A stretch of 28,498 nt of DNA from positions 1 to 28,498 of the forward strand of contig JAANOX010000263.1 in the NCBI GenBank assembly GCA_020184695.1. Reading direction: 5' to 3'. This document shows positions 5,360-21,956 of the stretch, in pieces. Position 1 is the stretch's first letter, and each line of letters starts with the position of its first letter. Below the pieces are notes generated by a model. That model made no database searches, was not told where the DNA came from, and saw only the letters and a list, made by a program, of their open reading frames with translations. The translations under genes and the position numbers were made by a program. This DNA comes from Histomonas meleagridis 2922-C6/04-290x (lineage: Eukaryota > Protista > Parabasalia).

Positions 5360-6016
5360 GTGGAATTGAAATTCATCCAATTCGTGTTACATTTAATTAA
5401 ATCTGATGTTAGAGTCGCTGTTTTTAGCAAACTGAAAATGGCTAAGCAAAAGGCTGCAATAATACGGTATTATGCACACGGATTATACAGCGAATTCTAT
5501 AAAACAACAATTGGTGTCGACTTTGCAAGTAAAGACTTAACAATAAACAATAAGCATGTAGGACTTGCTATTCTTGATATCGCAGGCCAAGAACGATATG
5601 GAAATTATACTCAAGTATATATGTCGGATGCATCTGGTGCAGTAATTATTTTTGACGCTAATTCGCCAAGTGAACTTGATGATGTAAATAAATGGGGAGA
5701 ATATATTAAAAGAAAAGTTTTGACATCAGAATATATTTCAATTCCTATTCTTTTAATAGGGTGTTTGGTTAATAATACGAACGAAAGTTATAAAGACTTA
5801 GAAGAGAAATATCGGAAATATAGTGAAGAAAAAGGATACATTGGATATTTCATTGTTGATGTTAAAACAGGTTTAAATATTGAAGAATCATTTTTCTCAC
5901 TTGCAAAATATATTGTTGATAATGATATTTATCCATCATCTGAAGAAATTGATTTAACTCCCAAAGAAGGTAAGGGCAAAAAAGGTGAAAAGAATAAAGT
6001 TTGTGTTATTCAGTAA
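5360..6016 (+). CDS. Rab32/38-like small GTPase with degenerate nucleotide-binding motifs; C-terminal CaaX (CVIQ); start uncertain (GTG 5360 or ATG 5438)
   Basis: YKTTIGVDFA switch I and DIAGQERYGNY switch II resemble Rab32. No GxxxxGK(S/T) (KMAKQKAA instead); G4 reads GCLV and G5 reads DVKTG. Confidence 0.8.
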   Translation: MELKFIQFVLHLIKSDVRVAVFSKLKMAKQKAAIIRYYAHGLYSEFYKTTIGVDFASKDLTINNKHVGLAILDIAGQERYGNYTQVYMSDASGAVIIFDANSPSELDDVNKWGEYIKRKVLTSEYISIPILLIGCLVNNTNESYKDLEEKYRKYSEEKGYIGYFIVDVKTGLNIEESFFSLAKYIVDNDIYPSSEEIDLTPKEGKGKKGEKNKVCVIQ

Positions 6017-6592: not shown

Positions 6593-8449
6593 TCATAAAA
6601 GAATACAATTAGAATTTTTGTTCCGAAGTAAATTTACTATTTCTATATTATTATTTCTAACTGCTATATGAAGTGCTGTTTCAAATTATTAAAACATATT
6701 CTAAATTATTAAAACATATTCCAAATTATTAAAACATATATAAAATTATTCAAATGAATATTTTTTGCATTAACATCAATTCCTTCTTTATCTAAAAGTA
6801 ATTTTACTATTTCTATATTATTATTTCTAACTGCTATATGAAGTGCTGTTTCAAATTATTAAAACATATTCTAAATTATTAAAACATATTTCAAATTATT
6901 GAAAAATATTCTAAATTATTAAAATATATTCTAAATTATTAAAACATATATAAAATTATTAAAACATATTCTAAATTATTAAAACATATTCCAAATTATT
7001 AAAACATATATAAAATTATTCAAATGAATATTTTTTGCATTAACATCAATTCCTTCTTTATCTAAAAGTAATTTTACTATTTCTATATTATTATTTCTAA
7101 CTGCAATATGAAGTGCTGTTCCAAATTATTAAAACATATTCCAAATTATTAAAACATATATCAAATTATTAAAACATATTTTAAATTCTTCAAATGGATA
7201 ATTCTTGCATTAACATCAATTTCTTTTTGTTCTAAAACATATTTCACAAGTTCGATATTTCCTGATTCTGAAGCAAATGGCAAAATATCTTTTGGAATTT
7301 GATTATTTTGAAGGAAATATTTCACGAGATATAAATTCTCATTTCTTGCTGATACATTTATATCATCAGCATTAACATTAATTCCTATTTCAGACAAAAA
7401 TGCTAAAGTTTCATAATTATCTTTTTTAATACAAAAACTTATCAAATTATTAGTTTTATCTTCAGATATTTTTGGTATTGATTGTATTTTTTCTAATTTA
7501 TTCTCATAAATATATTTAAAGATATCATTTTGATGAAACATAATTGCTGCACAATATGCACCCCTAAATAATGAATGATTTTGTTCACATAAATGAATAA
7601 TTTCAAGATTTCCGCTTGCAACTGCATATTTACCTGTATTTTCGACATTTGCACCGTTCATAAGTAAATATTTAAAACATTTAACCGATCCAAAAAATGC
7701 TGAATAATCAATTAATGTAACATTTTCATGATTAATAAATGAACATCTTTCATAAAGTGATGGTTCAATTGTTTGATTAAAATTAAAATTTGCTTGTGAT
7801 GAAATTTCTTGAAGGTTTTCTATTTCATCTTTTCGAATTATTTTTGCAATTTCAATCGGATTATGTCCTTCTTTAACATATTTCTTATGAAGTTCCCAAT
7901 CATTCTTTGAAAGTTCATCATAATGATCCAAAAAGTATTTTTTAATTGGGTCATTTCCATTAGAGCCAAATGTCATGTGGGTTTGTTTTTGATTTCCTTC
8001 TTTTGTTTTATAATGAGCAAAATATTTTGAATTAATATTTTCAGTAATACTTTTATCAATTAAATTTTGTTCAATCATTTTCTCTATTAAATAATATGAT
8101 TCTTGTGTGCTCATTGTAGATATACGTTTTATAAAAATTGATATTAAATTAGTGATTTTTGATTAATTTCTTCTTCTTTTGTTTGAAGTGTTTTTAAAAA
8201 ATTTAAGTAAATATCATATTTATGTTTTGGTGATGAAAATGTATTATAAACTAATTTACTTATAATAATATTAAATGTTGGAAAATTTGTATCGAATAAT
8301 TCCAATACTTTTTTAACCGACACCTGGTAGTTTTCTTCGGTTAAACTGAATACAATTTTCTCAAGCTCAATTAGGAATTTCAAGCAGGTTGATAGATCGT
8401 TCAACTTTTTATCTCCTGTATTTATGGTGGTAGTATCATCATTCGGCAT
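6593..8449 (-). CDS. DUF3447-type ankyrin repeat protein (locus A); one homopolymer frameshift (~8158) and three spacer-interrupted C-terminal ankyrin junctions
   Basis: ORFs 8144-8449 and 7161-8114 join if A5 becomes A6 and then align with the 18.8 kb paralog. The motifs TLIDYSAFFGSVKCFKYLL, AVASGNLEIIHLCEQ and AIMFHQNDIFKYI are typical of trichomonad DUF3447-ankyrin proteins. Further ankyrin exons at 7122-7030, 6852-6760 and 6682-6593 (TALHIAVRNNNIEIVKLLLDKEGIDVNAKN), ending in TGA. Confidence 0.8.
6683..7199 (-). repeat. Ankyrin units separated by arrays of a 20-nt repeat (NNN + ATATGTTTTAATAATTT); spacers of 77, 177 and 77 nt
   Basis: Spacers 7199-7123, 7029-6853 and 6759-6683 each consist of one 17-mer plus 3, 8 and 3 copies of the 20-mer. 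Confidence 0.9.
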
Positions 8450-8805: not shown

Positions 8806-11104
8806 TTACATAACTGTAAGTAATGTCACTATTTTAGTGTGGCCATTTTCAGAAACATTAATTAAAATAAATCAATGCTTTTGGTATTGAATTTGATTTC
8901 TCTTCTTGCAAGAAGTAATTTAGCTATTTATGTGTTCCCTTTTTCAGAAGTTATCATAAATGCTGTTAAATTTATTTATGTATATTAAATTTTTTAGTTA
9001 AAACATTAAAAAAATAAAAATAAAGTATTTATCATTGATTAATACATGATTTTTATCAAGATAATATTTAATGATATAATATTGATTAGATTCACATGAA
9101 TGCATAAATGAAATTATATTTGTTATTAGGAAATTCCTTAAATTACGAAACAACATCAATACTTTAAAAATTACACAAAATTTTCCAAATTAATATCTTT
9201 CATATAAATATCTGCATCTTTTTTAATGAGAGATTTAACAATTTTTATGTAACCACATGAAGATGCAAACATAATTGTTAACCAAAATAAATTAAATAAT
9301 TTCCAAATATCAGATGAAAATATTTTATTCCTTAAATAAATTTCAAATTTCAATAATTTAAATCTTTAGAATTAATATGAAATTGTTTTCGCTCAAGAAT
9401 TAAACGTACAATATTTTCCAATCCTTTGTTTGATGCAATTCTAAGTGCCTCATCAAACATTTTTATTAAACCATAAATAAAAATCATAAACCCAAAAATC
9501 AATATTACTAACATTTGTATTAATTCCTTCTTTCGTAGTAAATTCAGCAAGTGCATCAATAAGTTCCCCATCATAAATTTCATCATATTCTTGTTCTATT
9601 TTATCTTGATCTGTAATTAAAGGTTTTCCATCATCTTGAATCGCATTTTTATATATAAAATCATTGTATTGAGGTTTTTCTAATCTTTCTGTTATTGTCG
9701 TATATTCAGCAAAATTTTCTATTATATGTTTTTCAACATCACGATTATCACATTTCGTTGGAGCTCCATGAAGTAATCTATGTGAAGCATTCATTTTAAC
9801 AGCTTTATTATTTTGGATACGATCAATTATTGATATATAATTATCTAATGAATGATTACTGATATATTTTATTGACAACATTTATGTTTATCTTAATCAA
9901 GTCAGATGAAGATTTACCATTTGCAACTACTTTAGACATCAAAACTGTTTCTTTTCGAATATTACTTTTTTAATATTGATCTTGAATGTATACTAATTGA
10001 TCTGGAATTTCATAATTATTAATCATAATTTTTAATAAATACCTGATATTGTATCTGTTAAAGTTTCAAATGAAATTTTTCCTATGCTTTTGATTAAGGA
10101 AATTCCAGCATTTTTAACTAAAATCCAAAAGAAATTTGAAATATTAACTCCAATCGTATGACCTTTAGATGCAACAATATCATCAGTATTACATACTGTA
10201 ATAATAAATTTTTCCTTTAAATTTTCATTTCTAATTCTTGTGGCTAATGCATTGCAAACACATAGAGGTGTTCCAATTGTAAATGCTTTAGCATTAATGT
10301 GATCATTAAAACGCAAAAGTGCTGCAGCTATGGCTGCAATCGCTCCTCCACCAGAGTATCCAAAAATATTATTTCTTTGAAGTATTTCTCTTTAAAAACT
10401 CCTTTGAAATGTGAAGTAATATCATCTGCAGCTTTGCTGTAGCCTTTATGCGCTGGACAGCCTTCAATGACTTGACATTCTTGATTTTGCCTGGAGATCA
10501 TGATATCTTTTACTGAAGTAAGATCAGTGCCTTTAATCCATATAAAAATGGATTCATTTCCCCGGAGATCTTTACACGTTACACACCGAAAAATAGGTGT
10601 TATTTGTTCGACTGTGGTTACATCATATTTTTCTGAAACATTAAATGTATATTGATTAGATATTGTAATAACATTACGGGAATCACCTAATATTTTTATT
10701 TTTTTTATATAGTATCATTAGTTCAAGTGAAGATATTGTAGTTGTTATTTTAGGTATTTTCATAGGAGACAGCTGCATTTGCCTGAATTTAATTCTTTTA
10801 TGGGTAATGGAAAAAATGCCAATCAAACATTTCTTAATTGAAACAAAACAGTTATTTAAGTCAAAAACAATCCTGGATTGAATGGATACAACTTTTTGAG
10901 AAATATATGACAGTTTTTGAATGATATGGAACATCATTATACTTATATGATGTTAATGATAAACCCAAAAATATGAAAAAATAAAGTTTGCGTATTCTGA
11001 AATTTTCTCGGAAATATTTAAACAATGGTTTGTACAAATAAAGATAAATATGAATAAAAAATGATTTTAAAGAAAGATACAAACGAAACAAGATTACAAC
11101 TCAT
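8806..11104 (-). pseudogene. Class 3 lipase fused to C-terminal spacer-interrupted ankyrin repeats (locus B); multiply disrupted
   Basis: Stitched frames give IWIKGT, AHKGY, nucleophile elbow GYSGGGAIA, FTIGTP, NTDDIVA and NHSLDNY (His). About five ankyrin repeats follow (EALRIASNKG, TIMFASSCG, SFMHSCESN, TAFMITSEKG, LINVSENGH). Several indels and in-frame TAAs; the 5' end (ATG 11104) is approximate. Confidence 0.7.
9118..9361 (-). other. Two 77-nt spacers (9361-9285, 9194-9118) with 17+3+17+3+17+3+17 register
   Basis: They decode to SKD-E-N-G-W and MKD-C-D-G-I, with GGA exactly at the third embedded codon. Confidence 0.75.
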
Positions 11105-11547: not shown

Positions 11548-12188
11548 ATGGTTGACCTAACATAAAAACCACTTGTAATTAAGGAAATTATTAAAATATC
11601 GCTTGTTGGTTATAACCCTGAGTATATGACTACATTTGCATGTATCTATTTTCAAGGAAACTTCCATGAATTTTGTAAAACAACAATCGGTGTAGACTTT
11701 GGAAGTAAGGAATATCCAATGGGCGACCAAATTCTTGTTGCTCAACTTTGGGATATTGCTGCTCAAGAACGATATGGAAATATGATTCATGTGTATTATC
11801 AAGAATCTGTTGGCGCAGTTATTGTTTTTTTGGTGCTAATCATCCAAATGAACTTGATTTTGTTGAATTGTGGAAAAAAGATATTGAAACAAAAGTATTC
11901 ACGTCAGAAGGTAAACCAATTCTTATACTTTTGGTAGGTTGTTTGAAAGGGGATGTAGATGAAAGATGGAAATCTATGGAAGAAAGATATCGGAAATATA
12001 GTGAAGAAAAAGGATTCATTGGATATTTCACAGTTAATCTCAACACAGGATCAAATGTTGAAGAATCTATTTCCTCACTTGTTAAGTATGTGTATGATAA
12101 TGGTATTCAGCCACAAACTACTGAATATGCAAGGGATCTGCAAGTGACTCCAAAGAATACGAAGCGGGAAGTATGTTATGTACAATAA
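11548..12188 (+). pseudogene. Second Rab32-like paralog, disrupted (in-frame TAA 11563-65, frameshift in T7 run 11825-31); CaaX-like CYVQ end
   Basis: MVDLT*KPLVIKEIIKISLVGYNPEYMT...KTTIGVDFG...WDIAAQERYGNM. ORFs 11626-11937 and 11748-12188 are two frames of one gene, co-linear with 5360-6016. Confidence 0.8.
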
Positions 12189-18839: not shown

Positions 18840-19968
18840 ATGATAACTACTTCCTATTTGATCTTAAAAAATGAATGTTTAGAAAATCGATTTTTCATGG
18901 AACTCCTTTTAAAGTTAGAGAAAATTATCTTTATTTTAAAAGAAGAAAATTTTAATTTAATAGTTGAACAAACAATGAAATTATTTGATTGCATATTCAT
19001 TATGAAATTTCATTATAAGCAAATTGATTTATTTTGTATTTTTATCACAAAAGAATCTGGACAATATATATTATAAATATTTAGAAACAATTCAAACAAA
19101 AGAAGAAGAAATTAACAAAAATATTCAAAAAAAAATTATTGAAATTTTTACTAACATTTTGGTTGATATTAATTCACAAGAATCATTTTATATAATTGAG
19201 AAAATGATTATTCTAAATTTAATTAATAAAAGTATCATAAACAAATTTAATAATATTTTCTACAGAATCAAAAAATTCAGAACTTGTTAAATTTATATTA
19301 GAACAAAAAGGAACTGATATTAATGCTAAAAATATAAAATTTATTTTAATAATTTTATATTTCAAAATAATATTTGGAAATTATTTAAATTATTTGATAC
19401 AGCACTTATGATTGCATCTTCAAATGGTTATACAAAAATAGTTAAATTACTTCTTGAACAAGAAGGAATTGATATTAATGCTAAAGATATTTATTTGTTT
19501 TATTTAATATTTATTTTAATAATTTGGTAATTCAAAATAAGATTTGGAAATTATTTAAATTATTTAGAACAGCACTTATTTTAGCATCTCAAAATGGTCA
19601 TACAGAAATAGTTAAATTACTTCTTGAACAAGAAGGAATTGATGTTAATGCTAAAAATATTTATTTGTTTTATTTGATATTTATTTTAATAATTTCTTAT
19701 TTCAAAATAATATTTGGAAATTATTTAAATTATTTGATACAGCACTTATTTTAGCATCTTGGAATGGTCATACAAAAATAGTTAAATTACTTGTTGAACA
19801 AAACGGAATTGATATTAATGCTAAAGATATTTATTTGTTTTGTTTATAATTTATTTTAATAATTTTGGATTTCAAAACAAGATTTGGAAATTATTTAAGT
19901 TATTTCATACAGCACTTATTTCAGCATCTGAAAAAGGTTATACAGAAATAGTTAAATTATTTAAATAA
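18840..19968 (+). pseudogene. Internally deleted paralog of locus A (locus C): N-terminal domain joined directly to five spacer-interrupted ankyrin repeats
   Basis: The N-terminus (ELLLKLEKIIF..., QTKEEEINK..., QESFYIIEKM) aligns with 8449-8050, then jumps at ~19250 to FSTESKNSELVKFILEQKGTDINAKN. Ankyrin exons at 19396-19488, 19566-19658, 19736-19828 and 19906-19968 (TAA). Confidence 0.75.
19396..19905 (+). repeat. 170-bp tandem repeat (93-nt ankyrin exon + 77-nt spacer), three full units plus flanking partial units
   Basis: agcactt recurs at 19401, 19571, 19741 and 19911 (period 170). Confidence 0.95.
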
Positions 19969-20033: not shown

Positions 20034-21956
20034 TCAAAACGGATCAATTACTGAAAACGGATCTTTCGGCTGCTTCGCATCTGCTTCTTTTGCATTTCTT
20101 TGTTGGCTTGAGCCGAACATATTATATACGTTGCCATTATTTGCATCATTTCCTATCATATCAAACAAACCATTGTTTTGTTGCTGTTGTTTGCCATTAT
20201 CGAACACATCGAATAATTCGTTGTTTTGTTTTTGTGAATTTCCGTTATTAAACACATCGAATAATTCATTGTTTTGTTGCTGCTGCTGCTGCTGTTTTGG
20301 TTGTGATGTATTACTGCCGCTAAACATATCGAATAAGTCATTGTTTTGTTGCTGTGGCTGCGAAGAAGTTGGACGCTGTTGAGGTGGCGCATTGCCAAAG
20401 ATATCAAACAAGTCTTCGTTTTGCTGCTGTTGCTGCTGTGGCTTTGTTGCTTCATTATCTAAAATGTCGAATAAGTTGTTATTGTTATTTTGTTGCTGTT
20501 GCTGTTGAGAATTTGTTTTCTCATTGCCGAGAATATCAAACAAGTCATCGCTTTGTTGCGGTGGAACATTTTCTTTTGCGCTTTCATTGTCTAACATATC
20601 AAATAAGTCATTGTTTTGCTGTGAATTTGTGTTTGCGTTATCATTAGAAAAGATGTCTTTGGGTTGCTGTGGTTGAGCAGATTCGGAAATTGGCGTTTGT
20701 GAATCATCAATTACTCCGTCGTTACCAAGCATATCAAACAAGCCGCCGGTGCTGTTTGACGGATTTTGTGGTCGCGGCTGTGGAGGTGATTTCTGTGGTG
20801 GTTCTTGTGGTAGTTCATCATCATCAAATATAGATGTACTGTCAAGCATACCAAATGCGTCTTTTTGTGGAGGCCTTTTGTGTGGTTCATTTTGTCCATG
20901 ACGTTGTGGGGCATTTTGGATAGAAGTTGAAGTATATGGTTGATATGTTGGATTTGCTGGTTTTTCACTTTGACCTCCATAATGCTGTTGGATGTTGCTT
21001 GCAACTGAGGAGGCCTTCTCTTTGATGAAATTGGCGGTTTTGTTGAAGAATGATTTAAACTTATCTTTAGCATTTCTGATAGAAAAGTGATCATGGTCTT
21101 CAGTGTGTTGTTGGTGCTCTGGAAAGTAATCTGAGTCCTGATCTAGTCCTTCAAATGGGTCATATTGTTCTTCTGAGTTTCCGATTTCAGGGGTGCTCTG
21201 CTTTTGAACGTTTATTTCCGGAGGTTGTTTTTGAGTGAAAATTGGGTTCTCTCTTTGGGTGTTCCGAATAATTTGCGATGGATCAATATATAAGAAAGGA
21301 TTATTAATCTTCTCTGGTTTTGGTGTAGGTGTTGTTATTTCAATAGGATCACATAATTCATATGTTGAATCTCCAAATATGTTATTTTCTTCTTGAGCAG
21401 AAAATCCTCCAATAAGGTCTTCATTGCTACCATTAGAATTTGTTGGAAATCCGAATATATCTTGATTATTATTTTGATTGTTTGTAGATTGATAATCAAT
21501 CATATTGGGTGAATTAGCTTGGTCATTTTGTGTATGTTCTACTTTCCTCTTCCTTCTTTTACGACGTTCAGGTAGATGTGGTGGTTGCATTGAATGGTCA
21601 ACCCATTTTTCTTGTTCATACTTTTGACGAATAAACTTAGTCATATTTGTAACATCAGTTGATGAAGGTCTTTGGAAATCAGGTGGAAGAAGTGCCTCCC
21701 AATAAGCATTTGCTTTAGCATTACCAACTCTTTCCATCATCGCAGCTTCTTCTTCTTTCCATGTATCAAGTGTACATGAACGAACGAATGAAATATGCGT
21801 TCCTAAAGAACGGTGAATACCGCTGCAATTGATACAAATGAAAATTCCTAGTTTTGAAGAAGCCCATCTTGGATCTTTTGCACCACAGTCTGCACAACGT
21901 TGATTTTCTGGGAGGTTCATCAATGCTGTTACACGGCTCTTATAATCCACAGACAT
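20034..21956 (-). CDS. ArfGAP-domain protein (SMAP/AGFG-like) with low-complexity C-terminal tail, 640 aa
   Basis: Zn-finger CADC-x16-CINC with [12 protein letters not shown] and LDTW. The tail has NPF, DPF and repeated DLFD motifs. ATG 21956 (MSVDYK) follows an Inr-like TCATA; an upstream in-frame ATG (MSEEFW) is an alternative start. Confidence 0.92.
20100..20830 (-). repeat. Degenerate coding repeats: (Q)n-N-N-[DE/G]-L-F-D-[MIV]-[LF] motifs
   Basis: About ten LFD units separated by poly-Q/N linkers in the ArfGAP tail. Confidence 0.8.

Follow-up and report, generated by a model that had tools for sequence, protein, structure and literature searches.

The window analysed here is a 28,498-nucleotide (nt) stretch of the genome of Histomonas meleagridis 2922-C6/04-290x (contig JAANOX010000263.1). 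On its minus strand lies gene A, an ankyrin (ANK) gene in which the beta-hairpin loop of an ANK repeat is broken up at positions 7123–7199 by four 17-nt elements with single codons, here called islands, between them. The same arrangement recurs in the rest of gene A, at two more loci of the window (loci B and C), and also outside it, both in homologues from metagenomes and in the H. meleagridis genome as published; throughout, ANK hairpins carry 17-nt elements, and always between whole codons. Below we describe the anatomy and conservation of the elements, the coding character of the islands, the intact exons around them, and the open reading frames (ORFs) that are restored when the elements are deleted. 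Taken together, these sequences incline us, with some reserve, to the view that each element is probably cut from the pre-mRNA precisely and independently, i.e. that it is an ultra-short non-canonical intron; both the removal itself and its placing at the level of RNA are what we infer from the DNA. We found no description of a 17-nt pattern in ANK hairpins in the literature.

Gene A is interrupted by three arrays of 17-nt elements

The product of gene A is an ANK protein with a DUF3447 domain (PF11929, E = 1.8e-10) plus PF12796. The parts of the gene and of its arrays A1, A2, and A3 are as follows.

8144–8449, minus strand: N-terminal ORF of gene A (ankyrin/DUF3447), 101 amino acids (aa), 48% identity to residues 6–86 of database protein P0002
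8156–8160, minus strand: A5 run with the 1-nt shift between the two ORFs of gene A, located by homologue alignment
7161–8114, minus strand: main ORF of gene A, DUF3447 and first ANK repeats (PF11929, PF12796), 58% identity to P0001
7123–7199, minus strand: array A1, 17-nt elements at 7183–7199, 7163–7179, 7143–7159, and 7123–7139
7180–7182, 7160–7162, and 7140–7142, minus strand: A1 islands AAA, GAT, and GGA
7120–7122, minus strand: fourth A1 island, GGA, just beyond the 77-nt span
7030–7119, minus strand: ANK exon (TALHIAVRNNNIEIVKLLLDKEGIDVNAKN), 30 codons, in frame once the elements are removed
6853–7029, minus strand: array A2, nine 17-nt elements with 3-nt islands between them (period 20, 8.6 copies)
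6850–6852, minus strand: ninth A2 island, GAA
6760–6849, minus strand: ANK exon near-identical to 7030–7119 (repeat family D1), from the element-removed ORF
6683–6759, minus strand: array A3, four 17-nt elements with islands TAT, GGA, and AGA; a GAA island follows at 6680–6682
6593–6679, minus strand: last ANK exon of gene A and stop codon TGA (6593–6595), the end of the 410-codon element-removed ORF

Array A1 is placed between the residues ...VNARI and TALHIAV... of an ANK repeat, with GCA AGA ATT at 7208–7200 on one side and ACA GCA CTT at 7119–7111 on the other, and its span is 4 × 17 + 3 × 3 = 77 nt. A preliminary description of the window had read this minus-strand string as four 17-mers with the islands AAA, GAT, and GGA followed by GGA at 7120–7122, and we confirmed it base for base; the 77-nt spacer, the stop at 7161, and the gene end at TGA 6593 were borne out as well. 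The stop codon of the main ORF is formed by the last T of the second 17-mer and the GA of the GAT island. The first element (7199–7183) is ATCCATTTGAAGAATTT, the second (7179–7163) is ATATGTTTTAATAATTT, and elements 2–4 are identical. Tandem Repeats Finder reports a 20-nt period at 7122–7187 (3.3 copies, 91% matches), as the earlier reading of a 20-nt tandem homogenisation had it, and from their sequence elements 2–4 appear to be a recent homogenised tandem copy of one element type together with the adjoining codon. The A1 17-mer occurs 19 times in the window with at most two mismatches, against 0.29 expected, i.e. 65 times the shuffled level. The supposed difference from the 17-mers of locus C needs correcting: only 2 of its 17 positions differ from ATTTATTTTAATAATTT, which is the second element there, so that the A1 17-mer is related to that locus.

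Deletion of the 17 elements from gene A leaves a single 410-codon ORF that runs from ATG 8114 to TGA 6593. The nine islands of A2 translate to YGRYRRERE, and in both A2 and A3 the glycine stands on the second island, not on the third. The three exons downstream of A1 are near-identical, young duplicates. Taken alone, the units of locus A are too young to show coding constraint.

Upstream, ORFs 8449–8144 and 8114–7161 align to P0002 residues 6–86 and 105–414, and a single missing A in the A5 run at 8156–8160 reconciles the two; the single homopolymer indel ascribed to gene A is therefore real as a feature of the assembled sequence. In the shifted frame, the 18 residues that separate the ORFs agree with the homologues in length and in hydrophobic pattern. 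A 17-mer-like string at 8133–8149, between the two ORFs, was rejected as an element because the shifted frame fits the homologues residue for residue, which points to a 1-nt indel. The frame break is either a true mutation or a homopolymer assembly error. Elsewhere in the window, a minus-strand class-3 lipase-like gene is split by a 1-nt shift in a T5 run (10362–10366) just before its GYSGGG motif. This second break may stem from a homopolymer error of long reads and need not mark a pseudogene, and it suggests homopolymer assembly errors as the alternative cause of the break in gene A.

Loci B and C decode in the same register

Two further loci of the window carry elements of the same kind.

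9118–9491, minus strand: locus B, ten 17-nt elements; spliced ORF of 237 codons versus 142 unspliced
19337–19905, plus strand: locus C, four ANK units with a period of 170 and 15 elements (repeat family D2)

The hairpins of locus B hold two, four, and four elements. Removal of the first two, at 9475–9491 and 9455–9471 (GTTTATGATTTTTATTT and GTTTAATAAAAATGTTT), fuses ORF 9881–9453 in frame to the next ANK exon; the four elements at 9345–9285 decode to KD-ENGW-L and those at 9194–9118 to KD-CDGI-I. In locus C, where the first element is 19 nt long (19337–19355), the hairpins decode to IYGD, NGGR, DLGD, and IWGH, and a natural stop near 19965 ends the array. The decoded hairpins of both loci fall between D/N and T-A-L. 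The register proposed at the outset, 17 nt skipped and 3 nt kept, proved to be general: D/N-x-x-G-x-T is obtained in the window, in homologues from Illumina metagenomes, and in H. meleagridis, and the decoded unit of 102 nt, or 34 aa, equals that of the uninterrupted relative P0025.

At the tail of locus B (9000–9117), a fourth insert of 61 nt does not split into 17- or 19-nt units, the exon after it has an in-frame TAA, and this end looks decayed. Ahead of locus C, N-terminal-type sequence at 18960–19335 all but abuts the last pre-array repeat, so that the locus looks like an internally deleted family member, and the frame may be broken by 1 nt in an A6 run near 19273.

Homologous genes are interrupted at the same place

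The named close relatives of gene A in the protein database are solely from H. meleagridis, the remainder being metagenome proteins. The close homologues all terminate at the same place, ...(I/V)N-x-K-D-I. On their contigs, the D/N codon is followed by an 80-nt block and then by an intact ANK exon in a different frame, and the public gene models P0001–P0016 stop within the first element. A GC-richer Illumina metagenome scaffold (L006) has six consecutive units with the islands YNGM, KSGK, KYGK, YYKL, KDGL, and SDGF, and the majority of its elements begin with GT.

The published H. meleagridis genome holds many such interrupted units. In one of its genes (L049, 10001–12190), deletion of 13 elements, twelve of 17 nt and one of 19 nt, gives one 654-codon ORF that finishes in a C-terminal capping repeat and a stop just ahead of the intergenic region. 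The NCBI model P0016 ends inside the first element of its gene. Gene A had been put forward as the best candidate for a functional substrate; its homogenised elements of locus C type, nine-unit array, duplicate exons, and 1-nt break speak against that choice, and the L049 gene is a cleaner test case.

Several relatives differ in other ways. A Histomonas-type gene (L004, 1840–1880) has one uninterrupted hairpin, KN-VMFE-SAL, with no glycine, which could reflect precise or imprecise loss of all four elements. At L003 5200–6480 (H. meleagridis), a mariner-like transposon with inverted ends lies inside the ANK/DUF3447 gene of P0012 and provides the last residues of the annotated protein. In Tritrichomonas foetus TRFO_31612 (L054, 4214–4860), ANK hairpins are broken at the same place by T-rich sequences of ~144, ~250, and 55 nt, and the annotated protein terminates within the first of them; these interruptions (55 to ~250 nt) could not be decoded as 17-mers.

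The elements have a narrow length and common ends

Element and island statistics were taken from 76 elements and 76 islands of 19 Histomonas-type units, chosen by their flanking exons alone. The element consensus is R-T-T-T-n-W-W-T-n-W-W-W-T-A-T-T-T, i.e. elements start with RTTT and finish with ATTT, with boundaries (slash) of the form W/RTTT and ATTT/R. Position 1 is A in 43, G in 29, and T in 4 elements, positions 2–4 are TTT, position 14 is A, and positions 15–17 are TTT, with T at position 17 in 67 of 76. Set beside the trichomonad 5' motifs GYAYGY and GTWYWD, the starts give a mixed picture: those of the GTTTAT type, a minority, fit GTWYWD, and ATTT starts and the GTTGAG start of a second lineage do not. 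The preliminary description held that length and ends are constrained and that the interior is free. The first part stands, with a purine start in 72 of 76 elements; the second does not, because a YAAT-like core recurs around positions 9–12, and the constraint on length is itself qualified by 19-nt variants.

These variants occur within intact arrays: five spacings of 118 nt between exons in the second lineage described below, and one case each in L049, locus C, and L050. The last of these, at L050 2378–2396, is the 19-nt element ATTTTTATATATATTTTAT between a glycine and an aspartate codon of a hairpin from yet another lineage; the protein of this hairpin is identical on seven contigs from several samples. 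In the second lineage, a spacing of 116 nt was found 72 times, compared with five cases of 118 nt and one each of 115 and 119 nt. A length peak that is narrow yet not absolute appears to be just what is seen in tiny introns. Hairpins carried 0, 1, 2, 3, 4, or 9 (A2) elements, with the codons unchanged, as expected for gain and loss of separate units. No fold was predicted or conserved for the RNA of the elements (the alignment fold was empty, mean z-score −0.2), and neither conserved stem-loops nor a bulge-helix-bulge was present at the two putative cut sites. A scan of ~400 kb gave clear cases in ANK hairpins only.

The islands have the features of codons

None of the 76 islands is a stop codon, compared with 32 of the 76 triplets read one base upstream. 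The chance of finding no stops is 0.002 for all 76 islands given the base composition of the elements, and 0.03 for the 57 non-glycine islands given their own. Island GC content (0.32) is the highest in the block, against 0.04–0.18 within the elements; the first base is a purine in 79% of islands, and 15 of the 19 units have GGN (Gly) as their third island. To judge from these sequences, such features would be expected of hairpin codons and not of spacer within one larger intron.

A second, distant parabasalid lineage carries single elements

A scan of JGI metagenome contigs with the N-terminal domain of the family gave 41 loci; the 68 units analysed from this lineage are, like the 19 Histomonas-type units, a modest sample. 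Because these loci also carry adaptin, Myb, and UBA genes, we assign them to a distant parabasalid; the adaptin encoded on one locus is 62–71% identical to that of Tritrichomonas, 67% to that of Trichomonas, and 55% to that of Histomonas. Here ANK exons are spaced by 99 nt (46 cases) or by 116 nt, i.e. 99 + 17 nt (72 cases), and the other spacings (133, 215, 232, 331, and 348 nt) either add up from 99 and 116 or point to a second element. This quantised spacing marks 17 nt as a discrete unit that does not depend on the 20-nt tandem arrangement. The interrupted hairpin reads D-x-x-[17 nt]-x-x-T, with one element each; the element consensus is GTTGAGTTTTTATATTT, and its position is that of the third Histomonas-type element.

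All 46 repeat units missed by the pattern search are stop-free, and at the decoded hairpin positions the residues used are similar to those in uninterrupted repeats. Between units, the nonsynonymous and synonymous differences of the exons (pN and pS) are 0.32 and 0.50, respectively, whereas the p-distance of the elements is 0.53, about the neutral level set by pS, and yet their length is fixed. Exon constraint, together with a length that stays fixed despite drift, indicates that the genes were kept long after the elements arose and argues against dead genes. On the evidence of these alignments, the pattern of selection argues for some process that would skip the elements exactly.

Host gene family and genomic setting

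The interrupted genes belong to one large ANK/DUF3447 family, and the family of gene A has the DUF3447 and Ank Pfam domains and a repeat period of 33–34 residues. The genes of the window use the standard genetic code and have long unbroken ORFs with AT-rich spacers between them; a ciliate or other variant code was ruled out, as ORFs of at least 800 aa are open in the standard code. A giant virus or a bacterium as the source was likewise rejected, on the strength of the genes found (PUF, ArfGAP, spatacsin, Akt-like kinase, adaptin, and Myb). Domain searches identified a Pumilio (PUF) protein, an ABCA transporter, a Ras-family small GTPase, an ArfGAP, a spatacsin C-terminal domain, an Akt-like kinase, and a tRNA methyltransferase, and searches for tRNAs and Rfam families gave zero matches across the window. 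Two Rab/Ras-like paralogues at 5360–6016 and 11557–12188, ~6.2 kb apart, are 78–81% identical over ~150 nt, the latter appearing fragmented into overlapping ORFs. The minus-strand ArfGAP gene (20146–20650) contains degenerate 48–75-nt repeats with CAG/CAA runs, giving a Gln-rich repeated C-terminal region.

Probable excision of single elements and the alternatives to it

We posit that a retooled spliceosome or another ruler-like activity would cut the elements out one by one; their removal would join the islands into a normal hairpin and restore the frame of the next repeat, and growth of an array in 20-nt units, as in A2, would add one loop residue per unit. No known intron kind or recoding signal fits the elements. 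A broader proposal, which their sequences raise and which we put forward tentatively and with more doubt than belief, is that parabasalids possess a hitherto unseen system of RNA processing or decoding, one able to measure off and take out 17-nt units without GT-AG and to join 3-nt exons serially.

Several results weigh against excision of separate ultra-short introns. The element consensus has no AG at the 3' end. GT-AG ends were not found among the 76 elements, only 29 of which start with G. The trichomonad 3' motif, RCTAACACAYAG or TCTAACH(1–2)AACAG, is absent, the elements ending in WWWTATTT. Their 17 nt fall short of the 23 nt of the smallest trichomonad intron known, and we know of no precedent for serial 17-nt introns with 3-nt exons between them. 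Specificity is hard to explain with signals so degenerate and AT-rich, and by frame arithmetic alone four excisions of 17 nt are equivalent to one of 77–80 nt. The spliced form of the H. meleagridis protein was not found among 5.8 billion proteins. Finally, locus A may be a young copy, perhaps a decaying one, because its elements are homogenised, A2 has nine units, and the frame is broken at 8156–8160.

The same protein would result from translational bypassing, in which the mRNA keeps the elements and the ribosome hops over 17 nt at a time, decoding one codon between hops; this might be stimulated by a conserved ANK nascent peptide, on the model of phage T4 gene 60 or of the mitochondrial byps of yeast. 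Spacing, islands, intact exons, and restored ORFs fit bypassing equally, as do the lack of splice-site dinucleotides and the confinement of the elements to one protein context with a conserved upstream peptide. We nevertheless regard it as unlikely: by inspection, the preceding codon, NAT or variable, matches neither the terminal TTT nor, beyond sporadic cases at the level of chance, the codon that follows, so that matched take-off and landing codons are not seen; the elements have no stem-loop and no conserved fold; and four consecutive hops with single codons decoded between them are unprecedented. Programmed ribosomal frameshifting, whereby each element would be translated as ~6 extra residues with a −1 shift, could draw on slippery-looking runs (TTTAAAT in element type 4, A AAA TAA in type 3, and G TTT TTA in the second lineage) and on a stop-free path through 74 of 76 elements. 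It is very unlikely, however, because 17 and 19 nt shift the frame in opposite directions, so that the near-identical 19-nt variants in intact arrays would need a +1 shift; moreover, no slippery heptamer is conserved among the elements, and with four shifts per repeat, 24 hydrophobic residues would enter a loop that has a conserved tight-turn glycine and an exact, conserved length.

Two alternatives dispense with small units altogether. If each Histomonas-type hairpin held one larger intron, comprising the 77–80-nt block or a 68–71-nt part of it, with the islands as conserved intron sequence, the frame would work equally well because the islands are 3 nt long; in one locus C unit, a 71-nt GT...AG intron can be drawn that leaves a 33-aa repeat, and the first interruption in T. 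foetus can be read as a GT-AG intron of 141 nt, albeit one without the trichomonad 3' motif. Most units, however, offer no usable GT/AG pair, and some (L001) have an in-frame stop ahead of the first GT. Stop-free, GC-rich islands with glycine in third place, the single 17-nt units of the second lineage, and hairpins with two elements beside contiguous codons would all go unexplained, and we hold a larger intron to be quite improbable. Other intron readings were tried and rejected: canonical GT-AG introns are workable for few units only, a U12-type AT-AC reading results in the wrong frame, and a 23-nt GT...AG reading of the second lineage could give an AG end to only ~8 of 68 units.

The other alternative is that no processing occurs, the genes being decaying pseudogenes or satellite-like ANK arrays expanded as 20-nt minisatellites, with proteins that end at the first element. 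The recent tandem homogenisation and copy-number change at locus A, the frame breaks at 8156–8160 and elsewhere, the decay of some units (e.g. two exons that contain stops, and the tail of locus B), and the lack of an expressed form in the protein database are in line with it. For the family as a whole, however, units and exons are not free of constraint, as a plain minisatellite in a dead gene would be: the exons past the elements stay open and ANK-like despite near-saturated synonymous divergence, the elements keep to 17 nt even as their sequence drifts, lineages whose adaptins are only ~55–70% identical share the pattern, and the genes close with proper capping repeats and stops after the last element. 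We judge decay without processing to be unlikely. Elimination at the DNA level from an expressed nuclear copy, as with the internal eliminated sequences (IESs) of ciliates, is suggested by short, AT-rich, precisely bounded elements in coding sequence; it is highly improbable, as parabasalids have no known split between germline and soma, the elements lack TA at their two boundaries and are shorter than the known IES minimum of ~26 bp, and every assembly examined (long-read and Illumina assemblies of H. meleagridis and several metagenomes) holds the interrupted form only, with no rearranged somatic copy.

Significance

If they are removed, the elements would rank with the shortest intervening sequences on record. 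They would form the first large class lacking GT-AG in a lineage with few introns, and their islands would be the first single-codon exons in tandem series; the ANK genes of published genomes would need re-annotation, since the H. meleagridis models end in the first element. Removal would also explain why standard pipelines with motif filters miss the elements. The shortest reported trichomonad intron has 23 nt, known trichomonad introns need the ACTAAC...ACAG motif, and the published trichomonad intron pipeline drops junctions without canonical motifs (PMC12316389). Because gene models end in the first element and intron pipelines drop motif-less junctions, the elements are easy to overlook. 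In its default setting, the STAR aligner counts gaps shorter than 21 nt as deletions. In a 2026 paper on T. foetus, 7,715 introns with protein evidence are treated as unvalidated. Excision would further offer a concrete, testable cause for part of the ~900 frameshift-split genes that have been open since the 2007 genome of Trichomonas vaginalis. If a dedicated system of the kind proposed above exists, 20-nt gain and loss, together with skipping that might be combinatorial, would allow it to tune the binding loops of a very large ANK family or to make them more diverse. If, on the other hand, the elements are not removed, it is a puzzle why exons and the 17-nt length stay conserved in unreadable genes.

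Comparison with known systems

The closest parallels are the ultra-short spliceosomal introns, of 15–16 nt in Stentor, 18–21 nt in the Bigelowiella nucleomorph, and 23–25 nt in Trichomonas (type B). Like these, the elements are tiny, AT/T-rich, and of very narrow length range (17, rarely 19), they are in phase 0 by descent, and a subset starts with GT; as in trichomonad introns, an A-rich core, here YAAT, lies ~6 nt from the 3' end, where the branch A sits. Unlike ultra-short introns, however, they lack a 3' AG (67 of 76 end in T), have A more often than G at position 1, stand in tandem with 3-nt exons, and are seen in ANK hairpins only, and unlike trichomonad introns they are without ACTAAC...ACAG and shorter than any known there. 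The 3-nt microexons of animals and plants share the single codon as an exon, but they are rare and surrounded by long canonical GT-AG introns, whereas up to nine islands follow one another here, 17 nt apart.

In systems other than the spliceosome, the resemblances are likewise partial. The bypassed gaps of T4 gene 60 (50 nt) and the mitochondrial byps of Magnusiomyces (27–55 nt) are also short non-coding gaps in ORFs, with no splice signals and with many copies per genome, but the elements have neither matched take-off and landing codons nor a take-off hairpin, are much shorter, and leave single codons to be decoded between gaps. Splicing by IRE1 (XBP1, 26 nt; bZIP60, 23 nt; HAC1) is precise, very short, of fixed length, frame-changing, and independent of GT-AG, as excision of the elements would be; its substrates, however, have twin stem-loops with a conserved loop motif, and the elements have no predicted or conserved structure. 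Ciliate IESs are short AT-rich breaks in coding DNA that are removed precisely, but they leave at the level of DNA, are bounded by TA, measure at least ~26 bp, and depend on nuclear dimorphism. Within the parabasalids, 1,465 split genes have been recorded in T. vaginalis, 923 of them split by frameshift and never explained, with ANK genes included (bioRxiv 10.64898/2026.08.31.748405). As in the genes described here, adjacent ORFs jointly encode one protein, and the cause is unsettled; that work, compared by its description, considers stop-codon read-through and pseudogenes and reports no 17-nt unit.

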